A DNA stretch of 64,000 nt. Origin: Takakia lepidozioides. Taxonomy: Eukaryota; Plantae; Bryophyta. The translations under genes and the position numbers were made by a program. Location: NCBI GenBank assembly GCA_030704615.1, contig CM060731.1, forward strand, positions 28,520,001 through 28,584,000. The letters are read 5' to 3'. Positions within the stretch are counted from its first letter, which is position 1; every line of letters starts with the position of its first letter. The notes beneath the pieces are model-generated. The model saw nothing but the letters and a program-made list of their open reading frames with translations. It did no database searches and was not told the origin of the DNA. This document shows positions 30,001 to 57,699 of the stretch, piece after piece.

Positions 30001-33000
30001 TAACTTGGAGATTATTGCTGTCCGTGTGAGTGGCAGGTACACAATGATTCCTGCATCTGTTTTTCTTGGGTTTACAGCCTCAGTTCTTTGGGTTGCTGAG
30101 GTGATGTCTTTATCTCCTCTCTCATAGCCAAGGTGATGATAGTGTTGGTTCATCAAATTTTTGTGGTGTTTGTGTTTTGGGCAATATTTCTGGTTTTGGG
30201 AAGTGTGCATGCCTCAGATCAGATATGAAATGATCAGAAAAAGTTGAATTCACCTACAACCAGGCTCTGCAGAAGTACCTGGCAATTCAAGTTTCTACAA
30301 CTGACTGTGCCTAGAGCTTGTTTTCAGGTGATAGTTTACTACAGTCCAATTATGAGAGGCAATCTTTTTTTTGCATGACTCATTCTAGCTGCGTTGAAAG
30401 AAACAATCCGCAGTCTGGAATTGATAAGCCTGGTGTAACTCCCACTTTGAGATGTTGATCTCTGGGAATGGGATTCACAGGGCACATACCTGACATATGC
30501 AGCAAAAAGTCATGCAGCTGCATGCAACATATCAGAAGAAGCTGCAATTGGGACTTTCAATGGGAGGTTTTGGGGGGTATTTGCATCAAATCAGGTTCTG
30601 TACCTCATCCCTGGTTTGCAGTTTGCTGATCCAGTGTTAGAAGACCTTTCCCTTTTGGATGGAGGATCTCTTTGTATGGTTCTTAAGGGTGAACTAAGAG
30701 GCACGTCCACATTTTCTTTTGTTTGGTGATATTTGAAAGATCAAAGCGTTAAAGCAGGATAAACCTCGACAGACAGGAAATTCCTGGCCAATGAGAAGGA
30801 AACTCAGTAATATATCTGCTAAGTCTCGTCTTATGTACAATTAGTACAACTTTTTCTGGAAAATGATAAGAAAATTGAATCTGATATCTCAGGTGATAGG
30901 CAATCTTATATCGCTGGTCTTACTGCAGTATGGAAAGGTGCGTGAAACAAACAACAGATTTTTGCAGTATTCCTGCTGATAGATTCCAGCTTGGCAAAGG
31001 GAGTCATGTTGTTGTCAGGAGATGTGAGCTGTCTGAAGGAGACTAGCTAAAACCATTGCAGAGCCCTGTTATGGTTTCTCACACTCAAGTGAGTGTTTGG
31101 CTATGTAGGGAATGATCTTGATCAAAGAGGATATATGAACAGCCGATTTTGAAATATTCTTAACATGGTGTGTAATCAAAGGCAGCATCCTCCATGATAA
31201 GTGAGTGTTTTGCTGCTACTCGACCTCATTGGGTAGAAAAGACAAAAGAATGGCCTCCTCTATCCGATGTTGTCATTCCATTTTGTGCCAAGCTATGTTT
31301 TATCTCACTGAAGCATTTATGAACCTCCAGGCTTCATCTGCCAATCCAGGCGAAGCCTCTCCTGGCACCATGCAACTTTTCATGGCGTTTCTTGGGAGTA
31401 TGACACTGGGCACTGTTCTTGCCTGCTTTCTGCGACCGCATGGTCAGGGTTCAAACCCCCTCTTAAGAGAGGATTTGGGCCTCTCTCCTAGACAAAATCG
31501 TGAGTTTGTGAACAGGACATTTGCTCTGCTGTTTGAAAAGAAGATGCTGCTGCTCATATTGGTCTTGATCTACACGGGCTTGCAGCAGGCCTTTATCTGG
31601 TATGTGTATTGTGGTGTGTATTCTTTTCTGTGTCACCTGAACATCTGTGGGGGTGCTGTCTCGCTTTCCTGTGTTTGCAGGCACATGAACAAAACCTACT
31701 GTTTATACAGTCAATTGTATCTATACTTCACCACTCCTCTAGAGCAGTTCACTGTTTATTACTGCATCTCGATATGTGACTCATTGATCGTTCGTTCTCA
31801 TCAAGTCATCTATGTTAGAACAGGGGGGATTTCACCAAGGACATCATCACACCAGCCTTTGGTGTTGCTTGGGTTGGAGGTGTGATGGCTTTATATGGCG
31901 CTGCTGATGCAATAGTAAGTTTATTGTCCCCATAACCCTATCTAAGCTTGTAGAGTTACAGAAAAAAATTTCCGTCTCATCTCAATTCTGTTGTTGCATG
32001 GTGTAGGGGTTTTGACGAAGTCAACTTGAGAAGCCACATCCTGCATGCTCAGTTACCGAGTTACTGAGTTTGATTGTCCCTGTTACTCTTCAAGTTCAAG
32101 TTCTTTACTGGGGTCCATGATGGGCGGGATAGGGTTCATTGGTTGCAGGCCAATTTTCAGCAGGGCTCGGCTCAATTGCTATCATTACAGGTGCTGGTGC
32201 GGCTGCACAGGCCTTCGTGATAATTGTACTCTACTGTAGGCAGGAGTAAGTCTCAAGGCTGCCGTGGCCATACTGCAGAAATCTGGTTGTACGTAAAAAT
32301 GTATCCTATTTCCTGATGTATGCTTCAATGGCTCAAGCGCTGGCACCTACTGGCATTCCCTGTGAAAATATCATGTATAGTTCTGAAGCTAAGATTAATC
32401 AGCCGTGTTTTATTTCTCTAGTATTCTGTAATCCCTATTACTGAGATATATGTATATGTGCATAATGCAGGTACATGGAAGGATGGATTGATTACCTAAT
32501 ATTGGGGGGACTAGCAACTGCATGGGGTGTGGGTGATGCCACATTCAACACACAGATCAGTGCACTTCTGGGCATTCTTTATCCCAACGATACTGTGAGC
32601 ACCTGGGTACCCTAAACCCAGATTAATCCCATTCAACAGATTCTTTGGGTATGAAATGACAGAATATGCTGGATGGAAATTATGTAGGACTTCCTCCATA
32701 AGTTGAGGTTTCGCACTCATGTGAGAGTGATGAGCTTGTCCTTACTGTTTATTTGCAGGGAAAATTAAGATCTCGTTCATGACATTGGGTCTCTCATGTA
32801 GGCCTTATGTACTGTGACCTTTAATGTTGTTGCAATATGCTGTTCTTGTTGGGGGTGGGCGGGGACGAGTCGCTCATAACAAAAATCACGAAAAGCTTGG
32901 TGGGTCAGAGATTTGACCAAGCTAGTTCTGTAGGTCATTTAAACCTGGCGATTTGAATGAGCAACCTTGCCTTGACAACTGGTGGCACATGATCTGTAGA

Positions 33001-38257: not shown

Positions 38258-39556
38258 TCAAGTAGCTTGAGCTTCTTGGGATTTGCTCTGTGCTCCCGAA
38301 GACTTCTTCTTGAGCTTGGGCCGCCATTTTGGGGAAGTGACATAGGATGCCTGCAGGGATACCATTTTGCGTAGAACGGCCAGTAGTCTTTCCTCAATGA
38401 CACGACCCTCCACTTCTAAAACTGAGAGTGCACGGGCGACGGCCTCCATGGTGCTCACACAACCATCAAAGGGCTCCTTTCTGAGGATCGAATCTGCGTC
38501 TCCCATGCCATCTCCCTCCTTGTGCATGTCGTAAGACAGACACACTTGTGTAACAAAATTACCGAGGAGAGGCAGGCTGGCAGTCACCATCTCCTTCGCA
38601 TGCTCCCAAGTCCCATCCATGACCAGTAAGGTGATTTGTGCCGTATCTACCGCATACTCGTGTCTCTCCTCCAGAGGGCCTTCAATCATGGATCCGGAAC
38701 TTCGACTCATTTTAAGATGTTCACAGTGAACACAGCTTGACTCGTTGTATCCACCACCATTTGATGCTAAAGCCGATGTCAGCTTGTAGCATAACTCCCC
38801 AACCCCTTCTAGTCCGCAGTTTCGATCATGACCTAAAATACCACGGACACCGCTGCTGACATGCTTTCTCAACGACCCATTGACCGATGCATATTTGCTG
38901 CCACCAGTAACTACAGAGTTCCTGTCCTCTCTGTAACGCTCAACATAACAGTTGCCATTGTGGCTGCTCTCTGCAAAGCATCCAACTTTGTCTGGTTCAA
39001 CCTGGCTACCCATCGTATGTTCTTCACCTTGCAGAAAACGTTGGCACCCATCATGGAAGGTCGAAGTTTCCAGGCTCGTACCTGTACACACCTGGTGAAG
39101 TGACTTCGACGATGCATAACTGCATTCTCCATCAAGTTTTGTAGATCTGTCACAAAAACCGTCTGACTGCATGGAGCATAACCACTTCCCGATGTCTACA
39201 GCATCAGGCCCAGGAAACAGAAGCAGAGCTGCTTTATGTTTCTGCCGTGATCCTGCATCCGCACACACTTTGCCCCAATCCCCACGAAAAACATCCTGGA
39301 TAGCCGACACTCTCGAATGTGACTTGACCAGAGAAGCTATGATAGGAGAAGAACCAGGGTGCAAACGACGACCGACAATAACATGGCATCGATCTACGCA
39401 ACGGGCAAGAATAGGCACAGTAGCTAATTTCTGGCGTGTTTCATGTGGATGTTGCAAGATTATAATTTGCGTGTTGATGTGCAAGGGTGGTGAAGGAAGC
39501 ACATCGCAGAGGCAGACGGAGAGAGGCCGACTGCAGCCGGGGCACAGAGGTCTCAT
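38258..39556 (-). CDS. DTW-domain protein (tRNA-uridine aminocarboxypropyltransferase, TapT/DTWD2-like), single exon
   Basis: CPGCSRPLSVCLC, IILQHPHE, LLFPG, LLVMDGTWEHAKEM and LRKEP..CVSTMEAVARAL. The first in-frame ATG is at 39556. Confidence 0.92.
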   Translation of the reverse strand: MRPLCPGCSRPLSVCLCDVLPSPPLHINTQIIILQHPHETRQKLATVPILARCVDRCHVIVGRRLHPGSSPIIASLVKSHSRVSAIQDVFRGDWGKVCADAGSRQKHKAALLLFPGPDAVDIGKWLCSMQSDGFCDRSTKLDGECSYASSKSLHQVCTGTSLETSTFHDGCQRFLQGEEHTMGSQVEPDKVGCFAESSHNGNCYVERYREDRNSVVTGGSKYASVNGSLRKHVSSGVRGILGHDRNCGLEGVGELCYKLTSALASNGGGYNESSCVHCEHLKMSRSSGSMIEGPLEERHEYAVDTAQITLLVMDGTWEHAKEMVTASLPLLGNFVTQVCLSYDMHKEGDGMGDADSILRKEPFDGCVSTMEAVARALSVLEVEGRVIEERLLAVLRKMVSLQASYVTSPKWRPKLKKKSSGAQSKSQEAQAT

Positions 39557-42220
39557 TGGAAACACAGTGTTTTCGCCTTTCGCTGCACTGATATGGCCAC
39601 CTTTCAGAAGCCAGTTTGCTCATTTTCCTCCTCCGAACCGGGGGTTTGTTTTAGGCCTACAATGCATTAGCGCCCATCGCATCGAGCTTCCATTGCTACA
39701 GTAAATTCTTGCTCATTCTCACGGCAACCACCCATCACCGCTAATCTTATGCAACCAGGTGCCCCACATGTGTGAGGCGACCTGCTCTAACGCCCAAAGA
39801 CCAGCGAGTGTAGGGATCTAATTACGAAGTCCTTTCGCCTCATCGCGCTCTCTACAGATTGGGCAGGTGGGGAGGTCATTTTTGTCGGTGGACCTTAGAT
39901 TTCTCTGGTTACTTTGTACAGGGCCAGTCCCCATAACAAGTCCACCATACTCTGAAGATCAGAAGCATCTTACCAATGCCAATCTCTGCAAGAAAGTTTA
40001 ATGATGTCAACACTGACCTTCTCAGTAAATTTTCTGCCTAAGAAATGGTGTTTTGCTTGCTAAACGTGCAGCTCCCTTCCGAAGATTGAGCAACGCAGCC
40101 AACCAAACTGTGCTTATTGCGCACGGTTGTGGGGTCTGGTAATAAAGAGCTTGGCGGTGGAGGCCTCCCAAACCTTCACGATGCTCCATGTAGAGGACCA
40201 AAAAGCTATCAAAGAATGTGGAATATGGAAGACATTCTCAACAGCCTTCAAGGAGTGGCGTTTTTTGGCTATTCTCCACATTCTGGTTCCAACAACTAGT
40301 GTACCACAATTCCAGCAAGGTTCCATGGAGGGATAATGAGTTAGCAAGAATTGTGGAGAAGTTGACACCATTCAACCATAGGGGATGGAGAACAATTGTT
40401 CTGGCATTTTACGCCCACCTACCTGACTTGTAAGTGGAGGCACGGAGTGCAAGTCTTAATCCATGGGATTATACAGCCAGCACGTAAGCAACTCAAACGT
40501 TTTACAACGCCCATTTGATGCTGATGATCTAGATATATTGCTTTCTTGACAGGCCCAATGTCCAGCTTCCATTTAGACAGCTGAGTTATAGCCGAAAATG
40601 GTGTGCCAGGTTCGCTTGGAGAAGGGCATGCATCTGGTCAGGCCATATGAAATTGAGGAACCACACAAAGAGGATGCTTTGGGAGGTATCTAAAGTCCCA
40701 AAACAAGTCAGAGATTGCTTGGCAGGATGCAGACGCCTCAATGCAAGCAGAGAACTCTTCAAGAATGAGGAAATCCCCAGACAGTCACCAGAGCATTGGT
40801 AGGAAAAGCAGGTTTGTGGTCTGCTACTTCTAATTGCACAACACAAGAACATGAGAGAATTGGTGTGGTACTTATAACAAGTACAACTGCAATAGGTCAA
40901 AGCTTTTTAAGCTCATGTATGGCTGTTGGATGCTTGAAATAGGAAAACATTCAGGGGCTCTAAATTGGCAGAATCTATGATAGCTGAGTCCTATTCACAG
41001 GTCTTTGTGGCAGTTGGTGATTAAGGGCAGAATATGCACCACAACCAGATTATTCAGCATTCCCAAATGAAAAATCACAGATTTGGAGGTATATTGAAGT
41101 TTGACATTTGTCCTTCATGAGCTATCAAGTAGTCATTTCCTGACTTATGCTCAGTTACAGTAATGGTGTCAGAAAGTTTTAAGATCACTGGTTTCATGTT
41201 CTTGTAACCATGATGATCATCTATCAATTGAGTTTTTTGGCCAAGTTATCTCCGTTACTGAAGTTGCTCAAGGATCTTTGCAGCCTGAGAGCACTGCAAG
41301 AGCTTTCCTTTTGGGTTGCCTCAGTCTCACTTTATGCCAAAGGATTGAGGAGTAAAGAATCTATGTGCATACTGGACCTTGCTCTTGGCAACCTGAGCTC
41401 GGCTCAGAGAGTTCTTCCAAGTTCTTCCAAACAGCTGTTACCGTCTCATGGAGCTACCAGAGAGCTTCAGGAAAATGAATGATGTGGAGTTTCTGGATCT
41501 TGGAGAATGGCCCTTGATAGATGGTTGAGGATATGCAACAAAAGAGCTGCCTTGTCCTAGAAGTACTTGTCGTTCCAAAAGACAGTGAGGAGATAAGGAC
41601 AATGACAGGTCTCCTGTGGATCTTAGTCTGGGTAAGATGTACTGCATACTGCAAATTATTCAATCTTGCAATGGCTGCTATCAGCATCATTAGAAGCAAC
41701 TAAGGTCATGAGCAGGACCCTGGCCAGAGTGTGATTGTTAAGAACAAATGTTAAGCTCCACATGTTTTGGATTCTTAAATCATCAAAGGGAATTGGACTT
41801 GTTGACTCCAAAACCATCCAGTTTCTGGCCAAAATTATGTGTATTCCACACTTAGCAAGAGACTACTGGATTGCATATGTGCCTCTCTCAGTGCTTTAAT
41901 CTTGAGACTAGTGAAAAAATCTTTCGACCACTCCATTAGCACTGCGCAGCTCCACATACCAAGTTGAGACATTACTGAAGCATGCTTGCTCCAAACCTAG
42001 TTCAGCATTTTACTCAAGTGATCCGATCACATCATATAAGTACCCTGCACCACTCACAGACCTATTATCACTGGTGGTTTAATGGTAGTTTAAGAAAATA
42101 CATAGGATTGTTAATTATGATTAACAAGTTACTAATTCCTTGTGGAATCTGACAGCGAGGTTGTCAAGTCTCTCTAAGTCCTCGCTCCTAGTCTTCGCTC
42201 AGACTGTGAGAGGGGGAACT

Positions 42221-53623: not shown

Positions 53624-55210
53624 GCTTTCTGCCTTCCTCGATCGCTCCCACTGCTTTTCTCTCTTCCCCTTCGTCTTCTCTCCTTTCTTGCTCTCCCTCT
53701 CCTCTCTTCCTTCGCAGAACTGAACCAGATCAAGAATGACAGAATCGCTGCAATTGACGGAAAGGGGCGGAAGCAATCATGCAAGCAAGTGATCTCTCTT
53801 GAATTCCACTCTCTCTCTCAGCCTTGCAAGACAAGCAATCATACGTCTGCTTATGATTACCAACAATTCAAGCACTCTGCCCTGTCATTCTCATCAACTC
53901 CAGTAATAGCGAGGTGTCAGAGTGACAGAGTGTGGGACACTCAGCGAGGATGCTTCCACTCGTGAGGACATGTCTTCCTGGAAAGAAGCAAGAAATGGCA
54001 AGTGTGGGTAGCACGTTAATAACGCCCGCTAACTACGCGTTCAACTGTTCGCCTCTCCGCCCTTCCTGTGGACGTTATCAACTGCATTTGTTTTTGCCTT
54101 TTTTTTCTGTGACTCGGGCTCATGTGTTTTGTAACTTGCTTCACCAAAAGTCCAATCTCCTCATTCAACATAAGAAGTTCTTCAAAGAGGCTCATGGCGT
54201 ACAAATTACCTTTAGCTTGTAGTCACCAACACTACTGAATCAATTTTTATTTCAACGTGCTTTCACTGTCTCCTGGTTTGCTGAGTGTGGACTAATGCCC
54301 AGAGGAAAATAATCAGCAGGTGTTTTAGCTGGATCGGGCCCATGCACATAGTTGTTCGTTCGGTGTTCACATGTGGAGGCCATGTTGAAAGCACACTAGC
54401 GTTAAAGGGCAATAGTATACAGGTTTTACTTTGGAAGGACAGTGCTGGATAATCGTGTTTCATGCCACAATTAGGCCACTCTTGAAGGACTTCCATAGCC
54501 TTCAAAGATAGCCTCTCTCACTCAAGACAAACAACAAACAACCATTCATTGCATGAGAGGAGGCACCATCCTCAACACTCACCCCAGAACTTGTGCATGG
54601 CCTTGAGTGAGAAGATCTCCTCACATGAGACTAGGTACAACTTCATTTGTCAGTTTTGAGCAAAACGCTCTCTAGATTAAATTGCAGATTGTCAAGGTAG
54701 ATTTCTAAGCAGGTTGCTACTTTTAACAAAAGAGCATCATGAGGTTCTTTTCTAGCCTCTCACATGTCCATCATCAAAATCATACATAGGTAGATGGATC
54801 TGCAGATTGCAAGCATAAATTGCTAAAACAAGGATTGTAGGACATGCAAAGTGGTCTTAGATCTCTCGAGCATGTTATGCGGAAATAACTCTGTTCAGCC
54901 AAAGATAGAGAGGGAAAAGACGCCAGCCGGAGCGGCATAACTAAGAGCCACTTCGCCTTTCAGCTACGGCCCCCTTTCGGGGGTGGGCCCTTCAGCCAAA
55001 CTACATCATTCCCTGGCCTTCCACAGAGATGCACCATTTTACAATCTTGAGATTGTCGAGCCTAAGACCAACTGAAGAGGGTATCAACAGCTCACATAAT
55101 GATGATTGCTTTGGAATCTCTACACCTTTCCTCTCCTACTTACAAGGCCTGTGGAAAGCAAAACATTCGCCCCAAACCATCTTCAAAATTTGACTGAACC
55201 CTATCAGCCT

Positions 55211-56658
55211 TCAAAGGCGGGGCCTGTCACTTTCATCTACATCAAATAACTTGTCATCTTCATGTTCCTCATCATCACTGTCATACTCACCATCTACACC
55301 CATCCCCAAATAGCGTCAGCCATGAATTAACAGTTTAAACAATATTTTAAAACTGCCTGTGAAGGTAGATGTGACTCGTTCCAGTAACTGCAGCAAGCCA
55401 ACAAGGTCTACATCTCATCCTTAATGAAGGTAAGCAATTCAAGAAAAGACAAGATTCTGATGCAGACCATACCACTCTCAGGCCCAGGTAGAGGTGCGGT
55501 GTAGTCTTGCGATGGCCTGAACTGGAGGGGCAAAAATTCCACTGAGAAGTTCCCCAAATGCGCATTTGACCAGTCTCTCTGAAGCTCAGCCTTCTTACTC
55601 TGAACAAAAGCGAAACTCACCGCAGGTCAAACAGACAATTGATACTCAAACCTGGGGACTAATCCATGGTTCAAGTTTATTCTTCTCAGATTGAATGACG
55701 TGAATGTGAAACTTCCATGTGGAAGCTGAATACTTTTGAAGTATATTTGTTACCCTGGCCAAAATGCAGATAGTAGTGTCCAAAAATCTCTGTTCTCCTT
55801 TTTCAGACATGAATCTCAGACTATGATTGACCATCGCATGATTTTCTGTAGGTTTTCACACCTATAACTCTCTTACTACAGGGAGATTACCATGCAGAGC
55901 TCTCTCTCTCTCTCTCCATACAACAGGTGACTGGCAGTGACCAACACCCTGGTTTCTATTAAGTACCAATACGAGCCTTTAAAACAACAACCTATTCCGT
56001 TCAACCGCGACACAGCCTGACTTTGACGTACATAGGTGGAGGAATCCCCAGGACAGGTCACCTATACGCTCAAGGACGTAGCAAACGATTTCAGGGAACG
56101 GTCGATGAAGACATGATGATTCATGGATGAAGATCACAGAAGCTACAAGAGAACAAAGGCAATTGGGGAAGTTGGGTATTACTGAGAACGTACCTCCAAT
56201 TCGGCAGCCGTGCTTGGAGGCGGGATGGATTCTCCCTTCAAGAGCATCGACCCAAAATGTGCATGCATGATTCTGCTGGTGTGCGTAAGGGCTCTCTCCT
56301 TTGTGGCACCCCGCCCCAGACAATCGCGCGAATCCAGAACTATTGCGTAATAATCGATGGTCCCATCCTCATTATCGCGATCGTCTAGCGATGCTGTGAA
56401 TACTGGATACTGGCGATGCTCGTCGTTTATCGATGACAAAGTCTGGTCCAACCGGGCAAGGGTACTAAGAGGTCGCAAGCGAATCAGAACCTCCCCAGCC
56501 TCCTGGCTGGGCTCGCCTCCATCGGCAGGACCGCTCAAATTGATGTCAATTTCTGGGCCCTCGGAGGCAGACTGTTTACTGCCTTCCAAGCTTGAATAAG
56601 ATCCCTGCTCTTCCTCTTCCTCTTCCCAGCCCCTCCATGGTTTGAATTCAAGACCCAT
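55211..56658 (-). CDS. Spliced gene encoding a HicB-like (UPF0150) domain, a possible Cro/C1 HTH and acidic termini; tentative 8 exons, 260 aa
   Basis: Exon 1 (56658-56194) contains YPVF..EDGTIDYYAIVLDSRDCLGRGATKERAL....AHFGSMLLKGESIPPPS. Further exons 56061-56032, 55948-55891, 55789-55754, 55651-55621, 55521-55473, 55387-55357 and 55293-55211 join in phase (783 nt in total). The last intron is GC-AG. Confidence 0.7.
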
Positions 56659-57699
56659 CTTCGCCTGTGGAGCACGCTAATCGTTTCCGGGAGAGGCGCT
56701 TCCCACAGAAGACCCCAACACTTCCTAGCCTCGTATCTCGAGAAACCTAATCTACTCAAAAGCTTTCTACGCGTGAGTCTTGAGAGGGATCCGGATTTTG
56801 GTGCAAATGAAACCCTAGACACAGACAACGGGAGGCAGAGAGACCGATGCTACAAGCAACACATGTAATCTCTAACCAAAGAAAACATGTAGGACACGGG
56901 TTATGGGTTCCGGAGAGAGAGAAAGATGGAAGCTCTCCCACAACCCAAGAAAGCAAAAAGCACTAGAAAGCTGTTTGCAATCTTGCAACAGAGAAGCGAG
57001 ACGAGAAAGGCAGCAGCGCACGGCAGCAGGAATACCTAGGGGAGAGCGCAAATGAGTGGCCCTTGTTTTGAATAGGGAAAGTGCAACTCCATAGGTTCGG
57101 ATGGATGTGCACGAGTCACTGTGGATGTATTCTTGCTTCATGTAAAGCCTTTGGACAGCATCGATGGATGAAAAGAGAAGTACAAATTTACATGTTTCTA
57201 ATAATGGTACTGTCCTGTCCAACTTTTTGTCTTTTTTTTCTCTTTTTATCTTTTTTTTTCTGTTTTCAAGGAACTTATCTTTTTATTTTTTCCCTCTTTT
57301 TTTCTAAAGGAAAGGGAACAGAGGCTCTTTTAATCAAATTAGTTAAAAAAATGTTCACAAAAGGTGGAAAAAAAAACCAACGGGGAGGCTGTAAAGGCTA
57401 ACTAAGAGGGAACTTCCCCGAAACCAAAGCAAACTAGCTATACTAAGACAGACAGTGATGTAGCAGGGAGAACTAAGTGAAAAGGAGAGGAACCATATGC
57501 ATAAGAAACCTACATGTAAGCGTACAACTGTAAGCATACACTAAGGCCCAAGCGTCTGGTTTGCAAGCGAAACAATGCATGTTCGAGATGAACATGGCTG
57601 GTAGCAAGTCAAGAAAAGATTGTCCGAGAAAACACATGAGAGCGACCAAGCTAAGCAATGTAAGAACTTGAACAGCTCGCTAAAGTCTGAAGATGTGAT

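Follow-up and report, generated by a model that had tools for sequence, protein, structure and literature searches.

The window analysed here, a 64,000-nucleotide stretch of Takakia lepidozioides contig CM060731.1, contains on its minus strand a nuclear gene (coding positions 56658 to 55211) whose product resembles, over part of its length, HicB, an antitoxin of prokaryotes and phages. The gene is genuine, spliced and expressed, with three coding exons and 224 codons, and it is the only copy of its gene family in the 64-kb window. A preliminary description of the same sequence had presented it as an eight-exon gene for a complete antitoxin of the bacterial type, including a DNA-binding domain.

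Gene structure and transcripts

The transcript evidence consists of contigs from two public runs (X1 and X2, from two studies) aligned to positions 54900-57100. Both runs are small assemblies from the same organism, match the window at 99% or more and are taken as RNA on the basis of a presumed label. The contigs show exactly two splice joints, one connecting 56194 to 55599 (594 nucleotides skipped) and the other 55473 to 55293 (179 nucleotides skipped). The coding sequence is therefore divided into three exons (56658-56194, 55599-55473 and 55293-55211), which together give 675 nucleotides, or 224 codons and a stop, in a frame that is open throughout. Read on the minus strand, both introns begin with GT and end with AG (CT..AC on the plus strand); neither is of the GC-AG type. 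One X2 contig (record 8; 1428 nucleotides, depth 94) spans the whole messenger RNA (mRNA), covering 57040-56194, 55599-55473 and 55293-54900 followed by about 60 nucleotides more, and two X1 contigs (records 1 and 7) agree with it on the transcript structure. The spliced contigs are monocistronic. Thin contigs (6-7x) that run across intron 1 are consistent with an unspliced precursor.

The reading frames of the two downstream exons were also compared with related proteins. The exons were searched and modelled one by one, and a full-length homologue (P0019) stood in for the whole protein. Searched alone with BLASTP in the predicted frame, exon 2 matches a full-length Sphagnum protein (P0008) with 54% identity (E 1e-13) and exon 3 matches the same protein with E 7e-4. 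In the Sphagnum full-length proteins the residues that end exon 1 (..LE) run straight into a segment resembling exon 2. In a 268-kb genomic contig carrying another family member (L002), exon 2 is bounded at the same codons as in the window gene, and the two genes have both intron positions in common (phase 0 after ..LE and phase 1 after ..PES). Finally, intron-free transcript contigs of a further species encode P0019 without interruption.

The transcription unit (54840-57040, minus strand; mRNA of at least 1428 nucleotides) has its 5' end near 57040, while its 3' end is approximate, about 60 nucleotides below 54900. The 5' untranslated region (UTR) occupies 56659-57040 (about 382 nucleotides) and has no intron. 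It carries two short upstream open reading frames (ORFs), starting at ATG 56888 (12 codons) and ATG 56864 (4 codons). The ATG at 56658 opens a 159-codon ORF, of which 155 codons form coding exon 1 (56194-56658); this ends at the contig joint at 56194 and is followed by a GT donor at 56193-56192. Exon 1 opens with an N-terminal motif defined from the family alignments, MGLEFKP..WE(E/D)E (56608-56658), after which come an acidic linker of low complexity, a helix and the greater part of the HicB-like domain. The exon-1 part of this predicted domain (HicB_lk_antitox/UPF0150 type; 56194-56415, residues ~82-155) comprises strands 1-3, the long helix and the sequence GESIPPPS, and was delimited from profile, hhalign and language-model evidence.

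The contigs place intron 1 (594 nucleotides, GT..AG, phase 0), which includes a (CT)n run at about 55899-55918, at 55600-56193. It is followed by coding exon 2 (55473-55599), supported by both the contigs and the Sphagnum match, with 42 codons and one further base, the first of a GAT codon that is divided by intron 2. According to the alignments, this exon encodes SKKAELQRDW...FSVEF, which corresponds to the last-strand region of bacterial HicB_lk domains, and then a conserved PLQF..DY..P segment. Beyond intron 2 (55294-55472; 179 nucleotides, GT..AG, phase 1, also from the contigs), coding exon 3 (55211-55293; contigs and Sphagnum match) encodes the acidic tail (GEYDSDDEEHEDDKLFDVDES...) and ends with the stop codon at 55213-55211. 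Counted over the three exons together, the protein is strongly acidic, with 49 D+E against 21 K+R. The contigs continue into a 3' UTR of at least 370 nucleotides (54840-55210).

Two further observations concern the transcripts. About 50 nucleotides of the 3' UTR (54938-54988) recur, at 90-95%, in many contigs of both runs that are not otherwise related, either at their ends or in their interior. These contigs diverge on both sides of the stretch, which has the look of a dispersed repeat of short length, perhaps a fragment of a miniature inverted-repeat transposable element (MITE) or of another transposon. In addition, one X2 contig (depth 66) has an odd back-joint from 56627 to 55900, where six additional letters intervene; an assembly chimera may account for it, or else an RNA that is circular or rearranged.

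These results bear directly on the gene model given in the preliminary description. Its start at 56658 and its exon-1 peptide (YPV...EDG..YYAIVLDS...GRGATKERAL...KGESIPPPS), encoded by the ATG-initiated minus-strand ORF, are confirmed, and its stop at 55211 and acidic last exon are both correct. The internal structure was incorrect: in place of seven short introns (63-132 nucleotides, one of them GC-AG) and 260 amino acids, the spliced contigs of the two studies show two GT-AG introns (594 and 179 nucleotides) and 224 amino acids, and the junctions proposed earlier, including that of the GC-AG intron, are not seen in them.

The proposed Cro/C1-type helix-turn-helix (HTH) disappears with this model. 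Its first half (GLSINCLFDLR) lies at 55652-55620, within intron 1. Its second half (SGHRKTTPHLYLGLRV; 55473-55520, minus strand) is read in frame 2 of exon 2, whereas the real frame is frame 0, and is not translated. Neither half is present in the reading frame of the mRNA, and the frame of exon 2 in use is the one conserved in mosses. It had been stated beforehand that transcripts using other frames for exons 2-8 would remove the HTH, and such transcripts are what the contigs contain. The HTH is an artefact because a wrong splice model joined intron sequence to a wrong frame, and the suggestion that the protein is a transcription regulator therefore loses its basis. Pfam reports no DNA-binding family (HTH or ribbon-helix-helix, RHH) in the full-length homologues scanned. 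C-terminal to the HicB-like core, the protein continues with the last strand of that domain and then with a conserved acidic tail specific to the plant family.

The HicB-like domain

The N-terminal domain of HicB has a strand-strand-strand-helix-strand fold, which is a derived RNase H-like fold. Bacterial HicB represses its own operon through a separate HTH or RHH domain. The N-terminal domain itself binds the ribonuclease (RNase) HicA and blocks it, and in many bacterial HicB proteins an Xre-HTH or RHH domain is found at the C-terminal end (PMC2701414).

A profile of the plant domain, built from nine sequences of the family, was searched against 1.84 billion (1.84e9) representative proteins. 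The 17 matches consist of the plant family, one low-complexity false match and a single further protein, P0026 (E 4.2e-7), which has two HicB_lk_antitox domains (Pfam E 1e-38). The 445-kb metagenome scaffold that carries P0026 (L001) is taken to be bacterial; its called genes are of prokaryote type. A direct alignment of the family profile with P0026 using hhalign gives a probability of 94% (E 1.4e-7, 35% identity over 66 columns), and alignment with the experimentally characterised HicB of Escherichia coli K-12 gives 83-88% (E 3e-6 to 9e-6), while the negative controls, three unrelated E. coli proteins of the same locus (SutR, HicA and YdcR), give 0.06-0.24%; the family alignment behind these probabilities is shallow (effective number of sequences, Neff, ~1.6), which can inflate them.

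Other searches give the same answer. In a profile search of the PDB sequences, two of the three matches are HicB chains (6hpb_B and 6u0i_A, E ~0.02). The match listed at the top, a flagellin-hook repeat protein (E 0.015), was discarded as a spurious repeat match in which no stretch passes alone. The listed ESM-Atlas neighbours of the window domain and of a Sphagnum-like member (~50% identical to it) are all HicB/UPF0150 clusters, with scores of 0.89-0.93 and 178-199 of 256 features in common. Several members give matches to the Pfam family PF15919 that are below threshold (best E 0.006). The HicB motifs are matched in the right order by the family domain. When full-length homologues are used, the hhalign alignment passes GE.IP.PS and enters the exon-2 segment ERDW..VKL, which stands opposite the bacterial ..W..VPI leading to the last strand. 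The HicB-like domain therefore extends across intron 1. Judged from this body of sequence comparisons, the core of the protein (~95 residues, encoded by exon 1 and the beginning of exon 2) is very probably homologous, though remotely, to the N-terminal domain of bacterial HicB.

Some tests gave less. Single-sequence searches with exon 1 produced no usable match in NCBIfam or among the PDB sequences. Exon 1 also has a weak match to ELF (PF03317, E 0.05-0.13), which was discarded because the other members do not show it. AlphaFold2 models of the window exon 1 and of P0019, made with family-only alignments, each have a mean predicted local distance difference test score (pLDDT) of ~51 and are too poor for fold testing; from these low-confidence models, neither Foldseek against the PDB (both models) nor VIA-align (one model) gave a significant match.

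The plant family and the genomic surroundings

All significant relatives of the gene belong to one small family. Its named members are all from mosses: Sphagnum troendelagicum (entered as unnamed products), Physcomitrium patens (XP_024401636.1, which is LOC112294889 and UniProt A0A2K1J318, an 'uncharacterized protein') and Ceratodon purpureus (M758_2G067300). Many more copies, without names, are present in JGI, ENA and Logan assemblies. Some of the metagenome copies carry the automatic JGI label 'predicted RNase H-like HicB family nuclease', and many database entries are prokaryote-style gene calls that run into intron 1. No protein in the databases searched is more than 50% identical to the window protein. 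On these matches, the gene is a member of a small plant family that we encountered nowhere but in mosses and this bryophyte genome. Within the literature searched, on HicB or antitoxins in mosses and land plants and on the Physcomitrium accession, we found no description of this family. It adds a new, eukaryotic variant to a domain family already known, and its members were present in the databases beforehand, either uncharacterised or automatically labelled HicB.

The members share a common order of modules. The N-terminal motif MGLEFKP..WE(E/D)E comes first and is separated from the HicB-like core by a variable linker of low complexity and then a short helix; a C-terminal module follows the core. 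The first seven residues are invariant in 15 aligned sequences (one further homologue has E for K at the sixth position). The C-terminal module, KK...ERDW..(V)KLENFS.E...LQFQ.G.DY.A.PP.SDGEY.SD.E.EELFE.E, is nearly invariant from Sphagnum to Bryopsida, and the acidic (E/D)-rich tail carries an LF(D/E).(D/E) motif. Searched alone, the C-terminal part finds matches in the same family only. The window protein has all of these modules, in order.

In a tree of the domain, the moss copies together form the sister group of the window copy (support 89/89) with the domains of P0026 as outgroup; the domain is short, and the tree was drawn midpoint-rooted with the outgroup reading applied afterwards. Such a position would suit a liverwort or a moss lineage that diverged early. 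The bacterial row P0056 is placed among the Sphagnum sequences with a very long branch, which was treated as an artefact. Three Sphagnum-like metagenome or genome entries (P0053-P0055) are short copies of the domain with many substitutions at invariant positions and may be decaying peat-moss paralogues.

Elsewhere in the window, an uninterrupted ORF of 435 codons on the minus strand (38258-39565) has a DTW domain (PF03942, E 6e-36), of the type found in tRNA aminocarboxypropyl-uridine transferases; the protein collection has no entry identical to its product. On the plus strand, an ORF at 31205-31885 includes an UNC-93-like segment (PF05978, E 3e-9) and is probably one exon of a larger gene.

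Interpretation and comparison with known systems

Taken as a whole, the evidence shows an expressed nuclear gene of a small plant family and suggests that its core is probably a remote HicB N-domain, partnerless and domesticated. Because a remote homologue of HicB is encoded by an expressed, intron-bearing nuclear gene, an old bacterial acquisition followed by domestication is a reasonable reading. This part of the preliminary description stands, without the full architecture that depended on the HTH. The favoured origin is a bacterial transfer that preceded the splitting of the lineages now carrying the gene, since nothing comparable is found elsewhere among the 1.84 billion representatives and since the introns are shared. 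An older origin with later losses may be the alternative.

A number of points weigh against this reading. No member of the family reaches the PF15919 gathering score of 27 bits, the best being P0019 (17.1) and the window protein scoring 12.5 (E 0.17), and the score required for PF21748 (UPF0150) is not reached either; the domain assignment made initially is thus supported by the sequence profiles but misses the Pfam cut-off. A single bacterial protein (P0026) passes E 0.001 in the search of 1.84e9 representatives, and it does so with two domains summed. The comparisons pick out no particular bacterial donor.

Several other explanations can be compared with this reading. The likeness to HicB could be due to chance or convergence, the family being a bryophyte-specific invention with a strand-strand-helix layout and a proline-rich GE.IP.PS motif. 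The negative or sub-threshold single-sequence results (Pfam, NCBIfam, PDB), the poor structure models with their non-significant fold searches and the possible inflation of hhalign probabilities by a shallow alignment would all agree with this. However, independent methods converge on HicB: the large profile search (E 4e-7), the hhalign matches to two unrelated HicB proteins with clean controls, two of the three PDB profile matches and the language-model neighbours of two members of about 50% identity. The known motifs also occur in the right order and the match continues into the last strand. We consider chance or convergence unlikely. The initial proposal of a DNA-binding regulator with the complete HicB architecture (HicB fold and Cro/C1-type HTH, eight exons, 260 amino acids) has in its favour that a C-terminal Xre-HTH or RHH is common in bacterial HicB (PMC2701414) and that exon 1 and the last exon were rightly spotted, but it deserves hardly any credence: the mRNA has two introns, the HTH halves derive from intron 1 and from exon 2 read in a frame that is not used, the frame that is used is conserved in mosses and the Pfam scan of full-length homologues yields no HTH family.

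Bacterial contamination, or a dead relic (pseudogene), might be imagined from the prokaryotic type of the domain and from P0053-P0055, which look like decayed paralogues. Against this, the gene carries two spliceosomal introns, whose positions are conserved in another member of the family, and its spliced transcripts occur in two studies. Its frame is open across three exons, and conservation of the protein is strong across deep divergences among bryophytes, so that the chances of this explanation are negligible. It is also conceivable that the gene is half of a working pair of the toxin-antitoxin kind and holds in check a HicA-like RNase encoded elsewhere in the genome. This would be in line with the known job of the HicB N-domain, which is to bind and block HicA (PMC2701414), and with the strong conservation of the domain across the family, but the mRNA is monocistronic and a phmmer scan of the six-frame translation of the window with E. 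coli HicA, a search of very low sensitivity, reveals no HicA-like segment (best E 0.26). The scan is too insensitive to count because the same test misses the HicB-like exon: phmmer with E. coli HicB finds nothing in the window. A pair of this kind seems to us improbable.

For a partnerless, domesticated HicB-type gene, the following course of events can be proposed. A bacterial hicB ancestor would have been taken up before the divergence of the carrier lineages. The protein would no longer be an operon repressor and would have retained the binding domain alone. The HicB-like domain would bind a partner, either a protein (possibly one with a fold like that of a dsRBD, a domain that binds double-stranded RNA) or RNA, and the acidic tail and N-terminal motif would act as docking or regulatory peptides. 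The conserved ends do look like docking peptides, and the tail may include several putative S/T-x-x-D/E sites of the casein-kinase-2 type. We tentatively regard the protein as a possible partner-binding adaptor or inhibitor without DNA binding, an assignment to which we give somewhat less than an even chance. A more specific version is a long shot: an antitoxin domain captured by an early bryophyte might have persisted through hundreds of millions of years as a clamp that controls a host RNase or a dsRBD-fold protein of an RNA pathway. Such a clamp might act on a transferred enzyme of the HicA-like kind whose gene lies elsewhere, or on a dsRBD protein native to the plant. If true, this would be a regulatory pair derived from a toxin-antitoxin system and at work inside a land plant.

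The gene is of wider interest in several respects. The toxin-binding domain of an antitoxin is now found in a plant nuclear gene that has introns and is expressed. This gene has lost its toxin neighbour as well as its DNA-binding domain, and conserved end pieces specific to the plants have been added to it. Among the bacterial genes acquired by early land plants, it is one more clean candidate. Moreover, since Physcomitrium patens has an orthologue, it is an easily testable case of an orphan antitoxin domain in a eukaryote.

The closest characterised system is E. coli K-12 HicB (b1438), of the type II HicAB system (HicB structures 6HPB, 6U0I, 6G1C, 4P7D and 5YRZ). The plant protein has in common with bacterial HicB, in this order, a first strand starting from a tyrosine, a second strand ending in ..D.P, the G.T..(E)A motif, the long helix and GE.IP.PS. 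Unlike bacterial HicB, it is encoded by a nuclear gene with two introns, has no C-terminal HTH or RHH and has no adjacent hicA that we could find. It also adds the near-invariant N-terminal motif, the low-complexity linker and the acidic tail, and it falls below the Pfam cut-off.

The best match outside the plant family is with the stand-alone or tandem HicB_lk_antitox/UPF0150 proteins (P0026; PDB 3KWR, 'putative RNA-binding protein'). Like the plant protein, those of the P0026 type have neither a DNA-binding domain nor an adjacent hicA. They differ in that P0026 has two HicB_lk domains per chain and none of the plant N- and C-terminal modules. The P0026 scaffold itself shows an arrangement that is unusual for HicB: at L001:2186-4714 there are three tandem paralogous genes, each with two HicB_lk_antitox domains and with no adjacent hicA, beside a gene with an RRXRR domain.

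Within the plant family, the architecture of the window protein is the same from end to end as that of the moss proteins (Physcomitrium XP_024401636.1, Ceratodon and Sphagnum), and the exon-2 junctions are the same in L002, the genomic copy that was checked. The window protein differs from the moss proteins in being only 38-50% identical to them and in branching outside them all, and it lacks the additional repeat that the Sphagnum proteins have at the C-terminal end. More residues of bacterial appearance are retained in it than in the moss copies, for example EDG..YYA and a cysteine at the position where bacteria have PGC.
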